The translations under genes were made by a program, and so were the position numbers. A stretch of DNA of 64,000 nt, from positions 10,788,001 to 10,852,000 of the forward strand of contig NC_135762.1 in NCBI RefSeq assembly GCF_052425735.1, given 5' to 3'. This DNA is from Oculina patagonica (lineage: Eukaryota). Shown in pieces: positions 1 to 9,117 of this stretch; positions within the stretch are counted from its first letter, which is position 1, and each line of letters starts with the position of its first letter. The notes beneath the pieces are model-generated. The model searched no databases, was not told the DNA's origin, and saw only the letters and a program-made list of their open reading frames with translations.

Positions 1-541
1 TTGTAGACTTGCACCAAGTTGCCCTCTTGTTGTTGTTGTTGTTACCATTTGCAATTTGTGCTTTACATAGAACTATACCTTTGTTAGCAATCACAGTACC
101 AAGTTTAGTTTAGTTTTGTTTGGTTCTCAAGGGTCAAATTTTTATCCATAGCGAAAAAAGATAATAAAATAAAACTTTTATTTAAGTGTCGATTTATTTA
201 GCCCAATTGGGAATCATATAACACGAGGTTAAGGTTTTGGTCTATACAGGTCGTATACAAAACATGGAACACCCCGGTAGATCTGGTGCAGGGACCAGCC
301 CGGACCCCATGTAACTGCCTTATTTCCAATAAGCGCCCTCCTTTGAGCTATCAAAATAATAAAAAAGCACCCTGGATGTCAAATCGAATGATTACGATAA
401 TTTAGGAATAGCACTCGTCCGAACTTGATCACGTGCAAATAAAATCAGTTGTGAGTAGTTTATATAAGCGGCACTGGAATCGGGTCTTTATGCCAGTCTG
501 GAAGTCTGTGGGTTAAAAAGTAAAGCGGTGTCATAGCTTAC

Positions 542-3500
542 CATTCCATTCTTCATTCCTGCCTTCTTCTCGGCATCTGTACATTTCTTCCCAATCCAAA
601 CAAATATTCCACTGCTTCCGCAGTCCAGAATAAAGCAATCCTGGAAGAAAACTAATTGTTTACATGAATGCTTTCTTTCTTTTACAGTTCTAACTGTCTA
701 TCCTTTACTTGAAAATAAAAAAAAGCGTTAGCATTGACTCTTAGAAATAGAATAAATGACAGCGAGAACGTAATAAAATGAAAGCACTAGTCGATAAAAA
801 TAACAAGGCAATACTTTCAAAGCCACAATAAATCTCGCTGTACTGGTTTAGGACAAGACTCGCGTACCTTACAAAGCCAAATAGATTATAAAATGGGAAT
901 TTTCAAAAGTAATACGACTTTTTTAATTTTCACAAACATGTTTCGACGGTACATCCGTCATCGTCAGTGTGACGGTTATGAAAGTTTACAGTGATTTAAA
1001 ACGTGCCTGTTACAAATCATACGTTACATTGCGTTGAAAAGCAATACGCTAGATAAATTTTGAAGTTAACGGAATTAAAAAGAAGCGCGCGCGCGTGCAG
1101 CTATAGGGAAAGCGTCAAATTGATGTGTTTGACCTGTTGATTAAGGTCCGGCTTTTCCCACTTGATGTACATAGACTCCTTAAGCTTAACCTGGTACTTG
1201 GTAGGTGCAGAGTCTAAGATCTTGAAGCAGTCTAAGTTACAAGAGGTACGGCATGACTCTGAAGCCTGCAAATGCTTATAAACGTGAGAGGTTCTGTCCG
1301 ATGACAAGTGCTCGTGCACGCGCGTGGAGAAATGTCGGCTTGTTTCGCCAACGTAACAAGCATTACAGCTTGCACAAGAAAATTTGTACACGATGCGCGT
1401 ACGGAGCCTGTCAGGGAGAGGATCTTTCACGTTAAACAAGTTCTTAATTTTAAAAGTAGAATAAACAAATTTGATGTCTATGGGTTAACAGAATCGATCG
1501 ATTAGCTTGCGCACCCTTTGTTGGATGTGCAACACCCGAAAAATGCCCGATGTAGGGGATCTTGAAATAGTGCTTGGGCAACTCCTGTTGCTCGACACCT
1601 GTTGAAGGGAACAAATTTGTTTATTCTACTTTTAAAATTAAGAACTTGTTTAACGTGAAAGATCCTCTCCCTGACAGGCTCCGTACGCGCATCGTGTACA
1701 AATTTTCTTGTGCAAGCTGTAATGCTTGTTACGTTGGCGAAACAAGCCGACATTTCTCCACGCGCGTGCACGAGCACTTGTCATCGGACAGAACCTCTCA
1801 CGTTTATAAGCATTTGCAGGCTTCAGAGTCATGCCGTACCTCTTGTAACTTAGACTGCTTCAAGATCTTAGACTCTGCACCTACCAAGTACCAGGTTAAG
1901 CTTAAGGAGTCTATGTACATCAAGTGGGAAAAGCCGGACCTTAATCAACAGGTCAAACACATCAATTTGACGCTTTCCCTATAGCTGCACGCGCGCGCGC
2001 TTCTTTTTAATTCCGTTAACTTCAAAATTTATCTAGCGTATTGCTTTTCAACGCAATGTAACGTATGATTTGTAACAGGCACGTTTTAAATCACTGTAAA
2101 CTTTCATAACCGTCACACTGACGATGACGGATGTACCGTCGAAACATGTTTGTGAAAATTAAAAAAGTCGTATTACTTTTGAAAATTTCTACATTTTTGC
2201 TGCTGTCTCGACCAAAATGGGAATTAGTTTTAAAATCGAACAAGATTAGTTTCGGAAGCGAACTAAATAAATTTAAAACAAACAAAAGGTGTAAAAAAGA
2301 AATAGGACTAAATATGAATAATAATAAGAATAAGATGCGTTATGGCACTTATTCAGTAAAGCTACACATTTAACTTACATATGAATCCAGATGCTCTTTT
2401 TTCAGAGGAACTTCATTCACGGGTGTCATTTCCAGCGTTCCGCTTTCGTCGGATACCCTGCAAAGAAACCAGTTTTATATTCTTGCTGTCTCTCCCTTGA
2501 CCACACCAAAATGCTTTATATTACGAATAGTCAGCGATTTGATTTTCTTCCATGTTGTGACCTGACAAGTTTTTTGCCATCTTCACAGTAGCCGTGAATG
2601 AACTTCATCACGAAATCCACGCAACACTGGTCTGTACCACATTTACACCTTTTAGCAACATCAATATAGTGTATTGCATTTATGAAAATTTTATTGTGAA
2701 TTCCTTTGAACTTTTGTAAATCCTGAACGTGTTTAACCAAAGTCGCGGCCCGCCAGTGGCTCATTTGAATTCCAACTGATGAAGGCACCGCAGTCTCGAA
2801 ACACCCGGCCGTTTGCAACACTCTTAGCGCCCAACAAAAACGCACAGGATGCATTTTATCTACGCGAAAAGGGCACAAATCGCGTTTAAAAAAACCGCTT
2901 GGGCGCGCAGGCAAGAACGTGCAGTAGGTGTAATGCTAAGCGTGTTGATCACATACTGTACCTGTATAGCGTGACGCTTGTTTGACTGTGTTTCTCAAAT
3001 GCGACGTCATCACCTCCCTCTGAAGCGTCCTTGACGTCACCACGTGATCCAAGAGCTTCAAAAAAGTTGTTTTCGTCTCGGTGATCTTTGTTCTCATCTA
3101 AGAGCACGGATTAACTGTTAGAGTTTAAAAAAACTGAGCTGCAAAGTGTACATAAAAACGCTTTATGTTTTTTTTGCTGATTTTAGGAAGGGACGACGTT
3201 TCTTCCGTACCTACTGCAACATGCTACCTCTTACAAATTCATTAATTCTCTGTCCAACATACATTTTTTTCCAGTGCGAATGGTAACTCTGATGTTTACT
3301 CGAAATGAAGCGGGTTACGATCAATAGGATAATATATTTATTTCACCTATGATAACAAGTTTTGCTTTTCCTCCCCTCTCTTCGTCTCTTATTCGTCTTG
3401 CAACTTCAATTCCCTGAAACAAAAGACCAGTAGCAAACGTTTAACTATACAACGTTAGTTCTCTCTCACTTCTGTTCGTTCTGTCAGATTCAAGATAATA

Positions 3501-6500
3501 CATGTGATGAATGCCATTCGTAGATCAAACTTGGAGTTATGTACAAAAGTGAAAATTGATTATTACCTTCATTCGCTCTGTTCTGCTGCACTGAGACCCG
3601 TTCCAGCAGTGAATGGTCATTCCTTCGTCAAGAATAAACACATCGCCTTTGTTTAGTGACGTGTAGTGGAGCTCGACCTGTGAGACAGAATCAGCTACAA
3701 CATTGAAAACTGCCAGAGGTGTAACCCTTCATAGACACTTACACGTCTTACACGCTCAAAGGGGAAAGAATTTGTAAGTAAGGCCGTGACTAATTACGAT
3801 TGCGAGGATGGAAACGGATATGAAAATGTTAACAATATGAAATGTTAAAAAAAAAACTGTTGTACACTGACCTGTGATACGCGCACGTTTCTCTTTCCCT
3901 TGACATGAAAAAGCCGCTTCTCATAAACACCTCGCTGTACTTTTCTGAATCCAGAATCTACACCACCTTCCAGGTATCTACCAAACAAGTAATAAAATGT
4001 ATTTAATATTGCATCAGTCATCACAATTTCTCCAGTCTTTTCGGTAGAAGCTACGAATATCTTCTGGAAGATCCGATTCGTTTCCGGAATTGGAAGTTCT
4101 TAGAAGATCTTAGGATTTATCTTCCCTGACCTGAGGAGGCATTCCTTCATTATAAACACTTTTTTTTACCTACGTGTGCAGGACGACCCAGGACTAGTGT
4201 TCGCCATCTACTGAGAGGACCGACTCTCCTATTTACTTCATTCTGCAGATACGTCAGTTAAGTGATATGAGTTGATGCTTATTCCAATATAAACTTCGTA
4301 AAAGTAAGAGTTTTTTTTACTTACCTTATTCCTTTCGGAAAATAGTTCAAAAATTTCCTTGATTCGTGATCCTGAACCTTACGAAGAAAATGAAGACCAG
4401 AAGACAATTGTCATACTCATGATTTTGGCAGAGAATTTCCATTTCTAGCTTTATATGAGAAACAGTGCCTACCACTCATCCCCCCTCCAAGGGCTTGGTT
4501 AGTAGAAAGATTTACCCTATGCGTGGAACGTGCTGGCCTAATAGTTAGCACTTTGGACTTTTGAGCGAGCGATGTAGGTCCGAGGTCTGGTTAGTGTTAC
4601 GTTGTGTTCTTGAGAGACCTTTTACTCTCACAGTGTCTTTCCACCTCTGAGTATGAAATGGTGTCAATGAGCTGGTAGAACGACCTGTCAAAAAGCTGGG
4701 AGAGGGGGGGGGGGGGGGACAAGCGCTGGACGCATTCAAGGAGTGCAGTAATACTGTTTGTCGCTTCATGCTACAGAAGACCCTGATAAGCTCTGCAATG
4801 TAGGCCAATTTCTCCCGAGCGCAAACTTAATTGCTAAGATTGAACCGGTTTAAGCAGACACTCGTAAAGTAGATCTTCTCTCTAGTACTACAGTCATCGA
4901 TCTACTGAATCACTAAAAGCCTTTCTAATGTACGTATACACTTCTCTAAGGTGGATACCTTTCTAAGGTAGATAACTTCCTACTGTGGACACGTCCCTAA
5001 GGCAGACAGAGCGGCTCCACGACGTTTATAAAGAGTTGATTGGATATAATACTGAAAGCTTTCCGGGCTTTTAATAATTATTCCCGTACCTCTCTGTACT
5101 GTACTGGTCCACCGCCAAGACTATCATCCAACTCTACTGTCTTATAAGCAGCCACACCCTGTTCGTCCTGCAGTTAAGAAATATTAATAAACATCTGTTA
5201 CATGGCCGGGCTATGCAAACTTAGGATTCAAGCACGATAGATAATCACAGCAATGCATCTGTGACACATCAATACGCATTACACTGAAGCATCTACTCTT
5301 TAAAAGAAAATTACACAAACAGAAACTGGGTACGGATTTGAATAGACAGCTCAGTACAAATAAAATCAATTATAAGATTGAAAAAAAAAAAAAAAAAAAC
5401 AAATGAGAAATTTTTAGTTTTGGTATGGTTATTAAAAAGAACAACGACAACGACAATAAAAAATGAAAATAAAAGTACCTGAGAGGTGGTAGAGCCAAGC
5501 CAGAAATGTATATCCCACTCTAAATGAGATTCAACTTTTCTGGTCTAAAATAAAATAAAGTTTGAACGGAAACAAAAATAAAATAAAAATAAACAAACAA
5601 ATAAACAAGAAAAGCTGAAAATAAACCATAAAAACAGATTGATAAACAATTACACTGAAGTCTTGTAAGCATAACTCACCGATAAACAAATATACGAATC
5701 TCCTGAGTAGAACGTACCATAAGTTTTAACATCTTGAGCAACAACTTTCAGTTTCTATAGCAAATGATAAACAAAATTCCAAGAAGTCAAAACGACTTTT
5801 TTCTTCGTATAATATTAGCTACAGAAGATTAAAGCCTGGTTTTCACTAGCGACGCAAGCACAAGCGCAAGCATAAGCGCAATCACGCAAAAAGGACAAAT
5901 TTGATCCTTGTTCTTGTGCTTGCCGCAATTACGTGTAGTAGTTGATATTTCTTGACATGAGCAGTTTAGATGTATTTCTAGCGAATTCAGAAGGCCCAAA
6001 TATAAAAATGTCTCGGAGAAGCATGCCCCGGCCCCCTAGACGGTTTGTGATCATAGCATCGCTTTTGGTGGGCTCTCTCAAGCTGCCGCTTTTCCAATTG
6101 CTCCGACCCCCCGTCCCCCCAGTACATGAACGGCTGCAACAACTCTGCCCGCTAGAACAGTCACGAAAATACGTACAGGACTGACCGACACAACTTGAGC
6201 CGTAAACACATCTAGTGCTGCAGCAGACTCGATTCACACCGTAATAATTCTTGGAAGTACACCGATCGCTTGCACTAGCGAGAAGGCAATCATGACAACC
6301 AGTGCCGCGTATCTGAAGAGAATATCTAAGGAGAAAGCTGCCATATTTAACTCTCTCGATCCACGGCTTCCTTTCCTTCGTATTGTTGTTCTTATTGGGT
6401 TTCAAAAGTACAGCAAGGGAGGAAAAAAGAGAGAGTTGGTCTGGGAACGAAGTAGAAGAATCAGTAGAAGGATTTATTGCTGTGGTCACGTTATGCGTGA

Positions 6501-9117
6501 CTTCTGGGTAATCGTCCGTTCCCGATTTTAAAGACAAAAAAGCCTGCAAAAAAGATATCGAATAATTGCTACCTCTTTTAATACTGTAATACGACGGTTC
6601 TTTTTCTTATAATATTTAAAGCTAATTTGTTAAAGGATGACCCAATCCAAGAAGGTCACGGTATAGCATTTCAAACGAGCATTTCTCGCCTAGAGTGTCT
6701 ACAGTTTTAGGTGGTAGACAAAAACGCAGACCCCTTGCCTCCGTCAAGGCTCGATGCGAGTAGTTGAAGATTACACTATCGAAGCTCAAATTTGATATCT
6801 GCAGTATTCCATATCTGCGTTTCAAATTGTTAAATTTCCGTTCAAGCGTTAACATAGACTTAGCTTTCACAGTCGAGCGAATGTGGCCGAAATCAAGCGG
6901 AGAAAAAACAGACTTGAGGGTCGCCAGGGCTGATTCATAGGACTTTTTACTTAATTTCAAAAAGCAACAAGTCCTGCTTGAGGCGACGACAGGCTTTGGT
7001 ATCTTGAAACTCGCGTCTACTCAGTTTAAAATCGAGGAACTTGGGGAAAAAATGGTAAGAGATTATGTGAACAGGATCTTTTACGCTTCAACAAAGTCAC
7101 AAGCTTTTCCAGAAATACCGGTATACATTTTAAAATCGGTAATTAGAGCGTTCGACTAGTGAACGGAAGGTCGTGGGTTCAAGTCTCATCTGTGAACTCA
7201 GAATTTTTTCTGAGCTCCTCTCTTATAAAACACACGTCATTTCCATTAAAATTTAATATACCCGGTGTTAAATGAACATATCTTTGATAGAAACAATTCA
7301 AGCCGCGCATTAATTATGAGAAGCAACAGAAACAACTTTTAAATTATCAAATATTTCTGTCAATTCACAAGAATAAATGGAACCTACAAGGCAAGTGAAT
7401 TTCAGGAGTAGCCTCGCTCGCCTCGCCAAAGCGAGGTGAGCGAGAATCCACGCGTGTATGTCGCATTCGAGCGATAATCCACGCGTGCACCTCGCATTTT
7501 GCGCTGTGAGAGCCCAATGCAAAAATGGCAACTGATAGATGCCTCGTATCTGTTTCGTGGTTAATATCATGAGGTTGTATGAACTGCTTCGCTTAACTGC
7601 CTTCTTTGCTGAAAAGTTTGGAGATAAATTAAAGGGACATGCCTTGTTACATCATTCAGTTTTACACGGGAAACGTTCGATTAAACGCGTGAGCAACGTT
7701 TCACATTTTGAGTCAGTCGGGCATGCTACACAGTTCAATCGAGTTCCTCAGCGAATTCTAGTACTTGTGTCCCGTTTCACGGGTAAAACTTCAATGTGGG
7801 CCATTAATTCTACTTTTTTGCCAGAGATATGTCTCACGACGTAAACACGAAATTATTTTATTTCTCGCCCTCGAAGTTACAATTCCCACGTACAATGTTG
7901 TTGTCAGTTTTGAAATACGAAAAAATACGCATGCAGTGTAAAAGTTTATTTGTTTGGTTTAGAGAATAAATTTCGTCATTCTTTAAAAATAATCCTAGGG
8001 TTTTTTACGTTTTTGGTGATGACAGCCTAAAACGGTTCGTTTTTTAATGATAGTAATAAATATTTTATATGCACAAGACAATGAAAGCTCGGCTGGAAGT
8101 GTTGCATTTTTAAGTATAAACAAACGGTCTGAACATGAAGCTTTTTTCCGTATGCTTAGCACCTGTTGAACACAGCAAATGAATGCTAACTTAACAATTT
8201 TCAACACATTGCACTTGACGGCAACGCTCTAAATAAAAAGACAAACACCTCATTGGCAAATTTGTTCTTGTAAAAAATTTTACTCTTCGGCTTATAGTTC
8301 CTGCTTCGCGTTATAAAAGGAAGGTTCCAGATTCGATGCATGTATCACGTAGCGAATATCATTTCGTGCGTGATAACGTTAACTTAACCCGCGCTTCCCG
8401 CATCCGACACACAAAAGAGTGAAATATTTTATGTATTATTGTCAAGCTTTAATATAATCGACGTTTTATTGTTAAATTTACCAGGAGATAACCTTTGCAA
8501 TAATTACAATATGGAAATGCGATGACTATAGCTAAAGGAAAAACTGTAGTCTTTCAATTCTCTGTACCTCGATTTTTTTGCACCATATTGAACGACGGAA
8601 TTATAACTATTATTACTGCTTGTAAAAGTTAGACCAGACTGTAATTATTAAATATTATTTAAAAAATAGAAAAACTGACACCATCCTAAGTGAGCGCCAG
8701 TTTTAGGCACGACTCTTGTTTGCAATAACTGAGGTTCAATATAAGCGGTTTTATAAATTAAGGTCGGTATACCATAGTTGGTAAAATGAGATAATCTCTG
8801 GCGCCGAAAACGATTTTACTGACAGGAACGTTTTGTCTGGCAAGCTATTTTCAAATGATTTATTTTTATGAGCTGTATCGACCATGGAAAGCAATAGAGT
8901 TTTGTAGGAAAAGTAAAATTGTGTGTGAGTTGTCCATGGGACATATTCCTCTTCATATCTTGAGCCCTGAGCAAGTCCATAAGCCGCATCAATAAAAACC
9001 GCAAAGAAAAATATTATTTGCTGAACATTAACAGCAATTATTATGACTAACCTCAATTCTCCATATTTCCATGCCAGGCTTCTTCCCCGCTTCGAGGAAA
9101 GCGTCATCGACTCCCAT
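542..9117 (-). CDS. Gelsolin/villin (advillin-like) actin-binding protein; 5' part of gene, 11 coding exons (~312 aa, gelsolin repeats G1-G3), continues beyond left edge
   Basis: GT-AG exons in consistent phase: 9052-9117 ([22 protein letters not shown]), 5680-5754 ([19 protein letters not shown]), 5479-5544 (..[13 protein letters not shown]), 5090-5167 ([26 protein letters not shown]), 4325-4377 ([18 protein letters not shown]), 3872-3977 ([26 protein letters not shown]), 3567-3677 (..[17 protein letters not shown]), 3347-3413, 2962-3097, 2379-2457, 542-640 ([19 protein letters not shown]). These are the diagnostic gelsolin-repeat motifs. Villin versus gelsolin cannot be settled without the C-terminus. 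Confidence 0.95.
930..972 (-). ncRNA. Minimal type I hammerhead ribozyme (mirror copy; sense to host pre-mRNA)
   Basis: Exact reverse complement of 2113-2155. Confidence 0.88.
1101..1439 (-). pseudogene. 5'-truncated PLE GIY-YIG endonuclease domain (left copy)
   Basis: ORF track 112 aa with IVYKFSC..C..YVGET.R...R..EH motif; no RT domain upstream. Confidence 0.88.
1612..1984 (+). pseudogene. 5'-truncated PLE GIY-YIG endonuclease domain (right copy)
   Basis: ORF track 1574-1984; translation identical to the left copy from FNVKDP to the stop. Confidence 0.88.
2113..2155 (+). ncRNA. Minimal type I hammerhead ribozyme (PLE 3' end)
   Basis: TCACA-CTGACGA-T-GACGG-ATGTA-CCGTC-GAAA-CATG-TT-TGTGA. 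Intact CUGANGA/GAAA/UH core, stem II GACGG/CCGTC, stem I TCACA/TGTGA, palindromic ACATGT stem III, GUU cleavage triplet. Confidence 0.88.
4533..4830 (+). mobile_element. Degenerate tRNA-derived SINE (MetaSINE-like) in gelsolin/villin intron
   Basis: A-box-like TGGCCTAATAGTTAG, central GTTGTGTTCTTGAG..TTTACTCTCACAGTGTCT motif, 3' GTCGCTTCATGCTACAGAA; the 3' part resembles 32310-32900. Confidence 0.6.
6121..6344 (-). pseudogene. Frameshifted, truncated fragment of a secreted cysteine-rich protein gene nested in gelsolin/villin intron 1
   Basis: ATG 6344 gives signal-like [26 protein letters not shown]. The Cys-rich [34 protein letters not shown] follows in a different frame and is cut off at ~6121 by a G-rich repeat fragment. 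Confidence 0.55.
6622..7110 (-). mobile_element. Decayed Penelope-like element ORF N-terminal fragment
   Basis: ORF 6622-6960 contains [36 protein letters not shown], resembling the N-terminal domain that precedes PLE reverse transcriptases. Confidence 0.6.
7138..7215 (+). mobile_element. tRNA-derived SINE head
   Basis: TTAGAGCGTTCGACTAGTGAACGGAAGGTCGTGGGTTCAAGTCTC: tRNA-like, with a B-box GGTTCAAGTC. Confidence 0.55.

Follow-up and report, generated by a model that had tools for sequence, protein, structure and literature searches.

Positions 890-2225 of the window (the whole stretch of 64,000 nucleotides of Oculina patagonica DNA analysed here) hold a single 1,312-bp insertion, two copies of a Penelope-like element (PLE) arranged head-to-head, together with its flanking duplication. 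We consider it very likely that the locus records a single, very recent and polymorphic retrotransposition of an active PLE family, encoding reverse transcriptase (RT) and a GIY-YIG endonuclease, into an intron of a coral gelsolin-repeat gene, with the hairpin predicted for the pre-mRNA as a by-product. The structure proposed by an earlier reading made from the letters alone (the sequence-only reading) proved correct, while the function it attached to that structure is unsupported and was partly anticipated in the literature.

Layout of the insertion and its host intron

A repeat finder returned two inverted-repeat arms (898-1473 and 1612-2187) of 576 nt each, 100% complementary and 138 nt apart, and thus as identical as they had appeared to the sequence-only reading. 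The same search gave an exact direct 12-mer at 890-901 and 2214-2225. Together with a genome search, these repeats resolve the insertion into the following parts:

890-901, no strand: left copy of the target-site duplication (TSD), AAAATGGGAATT (exact repeat; single target copy in the empty allele; family TSD mode 12 bp)
902-1608, minus strand: left PLE copy, 5'-truncated and tail-less, 707 nt, sense to the host transcript (genome search)
1609-1611, no strand: filler GAA, 3 nt, at the inner 5'-to-5' junction (fits the canonical continuation of neither copy)
1612-2213, plus strand: right PLE copy, antisense to the host transcript, truncated at its 5' end and complete in its 3' tail (genome search)
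2188-2213, plus strand: PLE tail, confined to one arm (26 nt; with the palindromic AATT counted as target, 30 nt starting at 2184)
2214-2225, no strand: right copy of the TSD (exact repeat and empty allele)

Segment 902-1473 of the left copy is the part that pairs with the right copy, and the latter, at 602 nt, has end-to-end matches among other copies at 98-100% identity. The sequence-only reading had joined the two arms at their 5' ends; the head-to-head order stands, but the 138 nt between the arms are neither a loop nor foreign sequence, as 1474-1608 is the upstream continuation of the left copy and is always contiguous with the arm in the other copies found by the genome search. Beyond 1608 those copies run on upstream with common coding sequence, and the window copy ends there. 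The inner ends are unequal (1608 and 1612, with the filler between them), no duplication lies within the insert, and a single 12-bp duplication brackets the whole unit. The locus holds the inverted pair only, a tandem pseudo-LTR being absent.

Taken alone, the 12-mer repeat is not significant, because AT-rich DNA gives other chance 12-mers and further repeats of this length are indeed present in the same 4 kb. We identify it as the TSD, in agreement with the earlier claim, because it abuts both ends of the insert, because 13 of 14 sister pairs of the family carry a similar repeat of 11-17 bp, and because an empty allele was found. The palindromic AATT at 898-901 is assignable to either element or target; since the empty allele retains GGGAATT, we gave it to the target, so that the TSD measures 12 bp and the tail up to 30 nt. 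The extra 26 nt that had been noted on the right copy (2188-2213) do belong to the element, because other family copies likewise extend to 2213. Over 43 family copies the 3' ends are bimodal, falling at 2181-2197 or at 2208-2213. The published PLE tail measures 30-40 bp and sits at one end only (PMC8557442), and it has also been described in PMC11167929.

The insertion had been placed in an intron of a gelsolin-type gene, and this location was borne out by a family match in the neighbouring exon:

551-640, minus strand: downstream host exon, part of a gelsolin repeat (PF00626, E 1e-6, 28.9 bits; genome scan match 551-643)
641-2378, minus strand: host intron, GT at 2378-2377 and AG at 642-641 (read from the sequence)
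2379-2462, minus strand: upstream host exon, first half of the same gelsolin repeat (open frame; no Pfam match on its own)

The reading frame crosses the intron (...LDSY / DCFILD), whose length is 1,738 nt in the filled state and about 414 nt in the empty one. The family scan of the genome places an additional gelsolin repeat at 3570-3689 of the window. Farther along, at 5929-6549 on the minus strand, the list of open reading frames holds a 206-aa frame with a Cys-/Ser-rich stretch.

The element belongs to an RT and GIY-YIG family

Both arms carry the same remnant of an endonuclease reading frame:

1101-1439, minus strand: C-terminal ORF remnant of the GIY-YIG endonuclease, left copy (ORF list; identical to the right-arm ORF)
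1646-1984, plus strand: C-terminal ORF remnant of the GIY-YIG endonuclease, right copy (PF01541, E 8.2e-5; score 23.3 bits, above the 22.6 cut-off)

The arms of the window retain this GIY-YIG part only. A longer family copy (locus L016, positions 290-1870), 97-98% identical to the window copies over the common part, encodes RVT_1 (E 7.5e-11) and GIY-YIG (E 2.4e-4, at 21.8 bits slightly below the 22.6 cut-off) in one frame of 527 aa. Because these two domains share a frame in L016, the Penelope identity proposed earlier holds and the window element is, as judged from its coding sequence, a canonical EN+ PLE with RT and C-terminal GIY-YIG. Membership is here assigned from domains and insertion architecture, with Penelope/Poseidon, Neptune and Hydra as candidate clades.

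A search of the genome (529 Mb) gave at least 89 matches to the element, up to 100% identical. Because numerous BLAST matches begin at one and the same query position, a unit of about 711 nt was considered as a complete non-autonomous element; this reading was rejected, as other copies continue upstream with common RT-coding sequence.

Two observations concern the source lineage of the insertion. In the left copy, the linker frame containing PYIG (1450-1614, minus strand) differs from the GIY-YIG frame (1101-1439, minus strand), while L016 has both in one frame, and there may thus have been a frameshift upstream of the endonuclease in the lineage from which the window copies came. At position 2176 (mirrored at 909) the window copies have C, while most read-derived contigs of the family have T (13,380 of 15,859 in depth in run X1, and 26,241 of 27,548 in run X3), and the insertion therefore stems from a minority sublineage.

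The insertion is real, very recent and still polymorphic

Read-derived contigs and an empty allele confirm the earlier proposal of one real and very recent insertion. Run X1 yielded one contig of 1,084 nt over 500-927 and another of 3,213 nt over 2187-2600, neither of which shows a difference; since these short-read contigs span both asymmetric outer junctions, the junctions exist outside the assembly. X1 may be the source sample of the assembly, and only X3, which comes from a different study, is independent. The empty allele that had been named as a check was found in X3, where a contig from a diverged haplotype (depth 33.4) runs from 888 straight to 2219, leaving out the insert entirely. 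The filled allele is present in the same run as a contig over tail, TSD and flank (2187-2414, depth 24.9), covering the right junction only. As both alleles occur in X3 and their depths together equal the local value of 58.3, the insertion segregates. The two arms are 100% identical at this locus, against 92.5-99.7% in the 13 other pairs measured. By these results the insertion is genuine and very young, and it is still polymorphic.

The family inserts by default as head-to-head pairs

Among the 30 loci fetched, 14 further distinct head-to-head pairs of the family were found in the genome. The TSD has its mode at 12 bp in the 13 pairs that carry one of 11-17 bp, and the remaining pair (L007) has a 5-bp repeat only. 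In every one of the 14, one arm is tailed, ending at 2208-2213, and the other is tail-less, ending at 2181-2197. A probable further pair (L016/L023) is cut by the locus ends and was left out of the count. The head-to-head pair is therefore the default product of the family, and no special device operates at the window locus.

Two loci of the set, L003 (G000:C12:7857856-7861460) and L004 (G000:C12:7896894-7900498), carry the same complex PLE insertion at identical in-locus coordinates, 39 kb apart: a full 3' copy faces an inverted copy of which internal deletions have left four short pieces. The arrangement appears to be a segmental duplication younger than the insertion. Contigs of both X1 and X3 (window 930-1000 and 2110-2195) join about 955-974 directly to about 2116-2136, and other loci of the family are therefore tiny head-to-head palindromes with arms of about 60-90 nt, hardly more than the hammerhead and the 3' end.

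A chimeric long read folded back on itself could in principle have made a palindrome out of a single PLE copy, and such an artefact of read or assembly would account for arms that are perfectly identical; the inner junction (1608-1612) is moreover present in the assembly alone and absent from the listed read-derived contigs, and PLE structures are known to trouble assemblies (PMC8557442). However, a fold-back does not explain ends that are asymmetric, one tailed and one tail-less, and that both abut unique flank in read-derived contigs, nor inner ends that are unequal with filler between them, nor the same asymmetric layout at fourteen other loci, and the insertion of a single copy could not put PLE 3' ends against both flanks. 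We regard this explanation as highly improbable. Even less credit can be given to two independent insertions of the same family, adjacent or nested. The family is abundant and active enough for this, but the two copies are bracketed as one unit by the single 12-bp duplication with no internal duplications, the arms are identical to each other where other copies differ, and the empty allele is without both copies at once.

What we observed is the layout of the pair, its junctions, the empty allele and the regularity across the family; for the steps that would produce them in one retrotransposition we infer priming on two strands from published in vitro work with a lizard PLE. In that work the PLE protein cleaved and extended both strands, and RT had two internal start sites, one at either boundary of the tail (PMC11167929); in the published architecture, too, an inverted 5'-truncated copy lies alongside, and a single end carries a tail (PMC8557442). 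At the window locus, the endonuclease would have cut the two target strands 12 bp apart, and both 3' ends would have primed reverse transcription of the element RNA, one from the outer start, giving the tail, and the other from the inner start, giving none. Two incomplete cDNAs would then have been joined 5'-to-5' with three filler bases, the product being the 707-nt minus copy and the 602-nt plus copy with a 12-bp duplication on either side.

A minimal hammerhead motif in each arm

The sequence-only reading had seen a minimal hammerhead in each arm, and both motifs were recovered:

930-972, minus strand: minimal type-I hammerhead motif, left copy, predicted cleavage at 935/934 (mirror of 2113-2155; pattern match)
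2113-2155, plus strand: minimal type-I hammerhead motif, right copy, predicted cleavage after U at 2150 (core and helices by hand; pattern match)

Read by hand, both contain the full core, namely CUGANGA, GAAA, the A15.1-U16.1 pair and U17. In the right motif the core bases lie at 2118-2124 (CUGACGA), 2141-2144 and 2149-2150. Helix I has 5 bp (2113-2117 with 2151-2155, UCACA/UGUGA), as does helix II (2126-2130 with 2136-2140, GACGG/CCGUC), which is closed by G10.1-C11.1; an extra U at 2125 separates position 9 from 10.1, and the palindrome ACAUGU (2144-2149) stands in for helix III. A core-pattern search of the 64 kb matched at the two arm sites only, with 0.03 matches expected. Over about 40 copies, the mismatch rate in the right motif is 0.8%, against 1.8-3.7% in adjacent stretches.

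An Rfam search returned no hammerhead family on 1-5000 (E<=1) or on 2095-2175 (81 nt, E<=10), and its only match, tpke11, is sub-threshold and was discarded as spurious. The hammerhead models of Rfam need a true helix III. Since these curated models do not match, our claim is limited to a minimal hammerhead (min-HHR) motif, confirmed by hand and with the published PLE descriptor (PMC4209133) and not by a curated model. On the reading we favour, the minimal hammerheads are passengers of the element's 3' region.

The predicted hairpin and the proposed silencing role

As the sequence-only reading anticipated, the intron is predicted to fold into a long perfect duplex: the modelled energy is -1220 kcal/mol with the insert and -75 kcal/mol for the empty intron, with 574 base pairs formed between the arms, and every one of the 43 bases in the sense hammerhead would pair with the antisense arm. 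We regard this prediction as safe. The sequence-only reading went on to propose that the 576-bp duplex, transcribed from the host promoter, could hide the hammerhead, protecting the pre-mRNA from self-cleavage, and could feed Dicer or ADAR, with siRNAs able to silence the whole PLE family; on such a view the locus would be a selected 'trap'. In favour of such a device, besides the strength of the predicted fold, siRNAs would find targets in a family that is active and nearly identical throughout the genome, and siRNAs mapping exactly to rearranged Penelope inverted repeats have been reported in transformed Drosophila melanogaster; those siRNAs, however, were judged unable to silence Penelope efficiently (PMC3681739). 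The protective part is doubtful. The host pre-mRNA contains a single hammerhead in sense orientation, the motif at 930-972 (minus strand), and PLE minimal hammerheads are described as dependent on dimers, the single motif being without detectable cleavage and dimers weakly active (PMC4209133). There should hence be little self-cleavage to neutralise, and 'self-neutralising' probably answers a problem that does not exist. Against selection for a trap, the head-to-head layout is what the family makes by default, and an allele that is newborn and polymorphic has had no time for selection and bears no sign of it. We therefore find a selected trap very unlikely.

Two RNA runs from a differently labelled coral ('organism B') were uninformative on the locus. 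The small-RNA run X21 (75-nt raw reads) had 0 reads mapped and is no test of it. The polyA run X24 gave six reads, all on the repeat and none on host exons; these match the PLE arms at 95-99% or better (1068-1209, 1494-1635 and 1920-2203). As the six polyA reads match the arms, the PLE family or a close relative is transcribed in the 'organism B' coral, and the family may be shared between coral species.

In our preferred reading of one recent retrotransposition, the perfect hairpin of the pre-mRNA is an automatic by-product of the insertion mode and not a device; for the host gene it is most probably neutral or slightly deleterious. Some by-product siRNA or editing is plausible, and a function for such siRNA is unlikely. 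The wider idea that newborn PLE pairs in expressed introns of corals at once supply, from host promoters, siRNA or ADAR substrates directed at the still-active family they belong to is one to which we give little credence; if true, the PLE's own insertion mode would seed its silencing, and the window locus would be a natural test case. The siRNA-trap idea is not new for Penelope and is unsupported by the data here. A search of the endo-siRNA literature gave nothing on PLE hairpins of cnidarians in particular, and a 2026 retrozyme preprint has no bearing on inverted pairs.

What the locus does document is present or very recent activity of a PLE family in a stony coral, with one insertion still segregating. 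It can serve transposon annotation, as a population marker, and as a natural locus where filled and empty alleles would allow a test of the siRNA-trap idea.

Comparison with known systems

Hairpin-RNA and endo-siRNA loci, with the Drosophila Penelope siRNAs (PMC3681739) among them, resemble the window locus in that a long inverted repeat, if transcribed as one RNA, could likewise give Dicer substrates directed at the element family itself. They differ in that the arm length and perfect identity of the window pair reflect age and not design.

The hammerhead motifs agree with the PLE min-HHRs of Cervera and de la Pena (2014, PMC4209133) in type I topology, core bases and the G10.1-C11.1 pair, and share a very small palindromic helix III, from which activity in dimeric form is implied. 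Helix II, as read from the letters, has 5 bp here, whereas in several published families it has 6-8 bp.

With regard to integration, the two RT start sites of PAc (Poseidon of Anolis, PMC11167929) match the two 3'-end classes found here, about 30 nt apart, and cleavage and extension of both strands fit the inverted pairs. The evidence there is the biochemistry of a lizard element, while here it consists of genomic footprints in a coral, and the fourteen sister pairs fit the model of two start sites and two-strand priming drawn from that biochemistry.

The closest likeness is to the canonical EN+ PLEs of Evgen'ev and Arkhipova (2005) and Craig et al. (2021, PMC8557442), which have the same RT and C-terminal GIY-YIG and a hammerhead in the terminal repeat region, and which show the same heavy 5' truncation, adjacent inverted 5'-truncated copy, tail at one end and TSD of variable length (PMC8557442). 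There is no difference of kind, the tail of 26-30 nt being at the lower limit of the 30-40 bp published; the insertion is of an ordinary, well-documented sort and opens no new mechanism.
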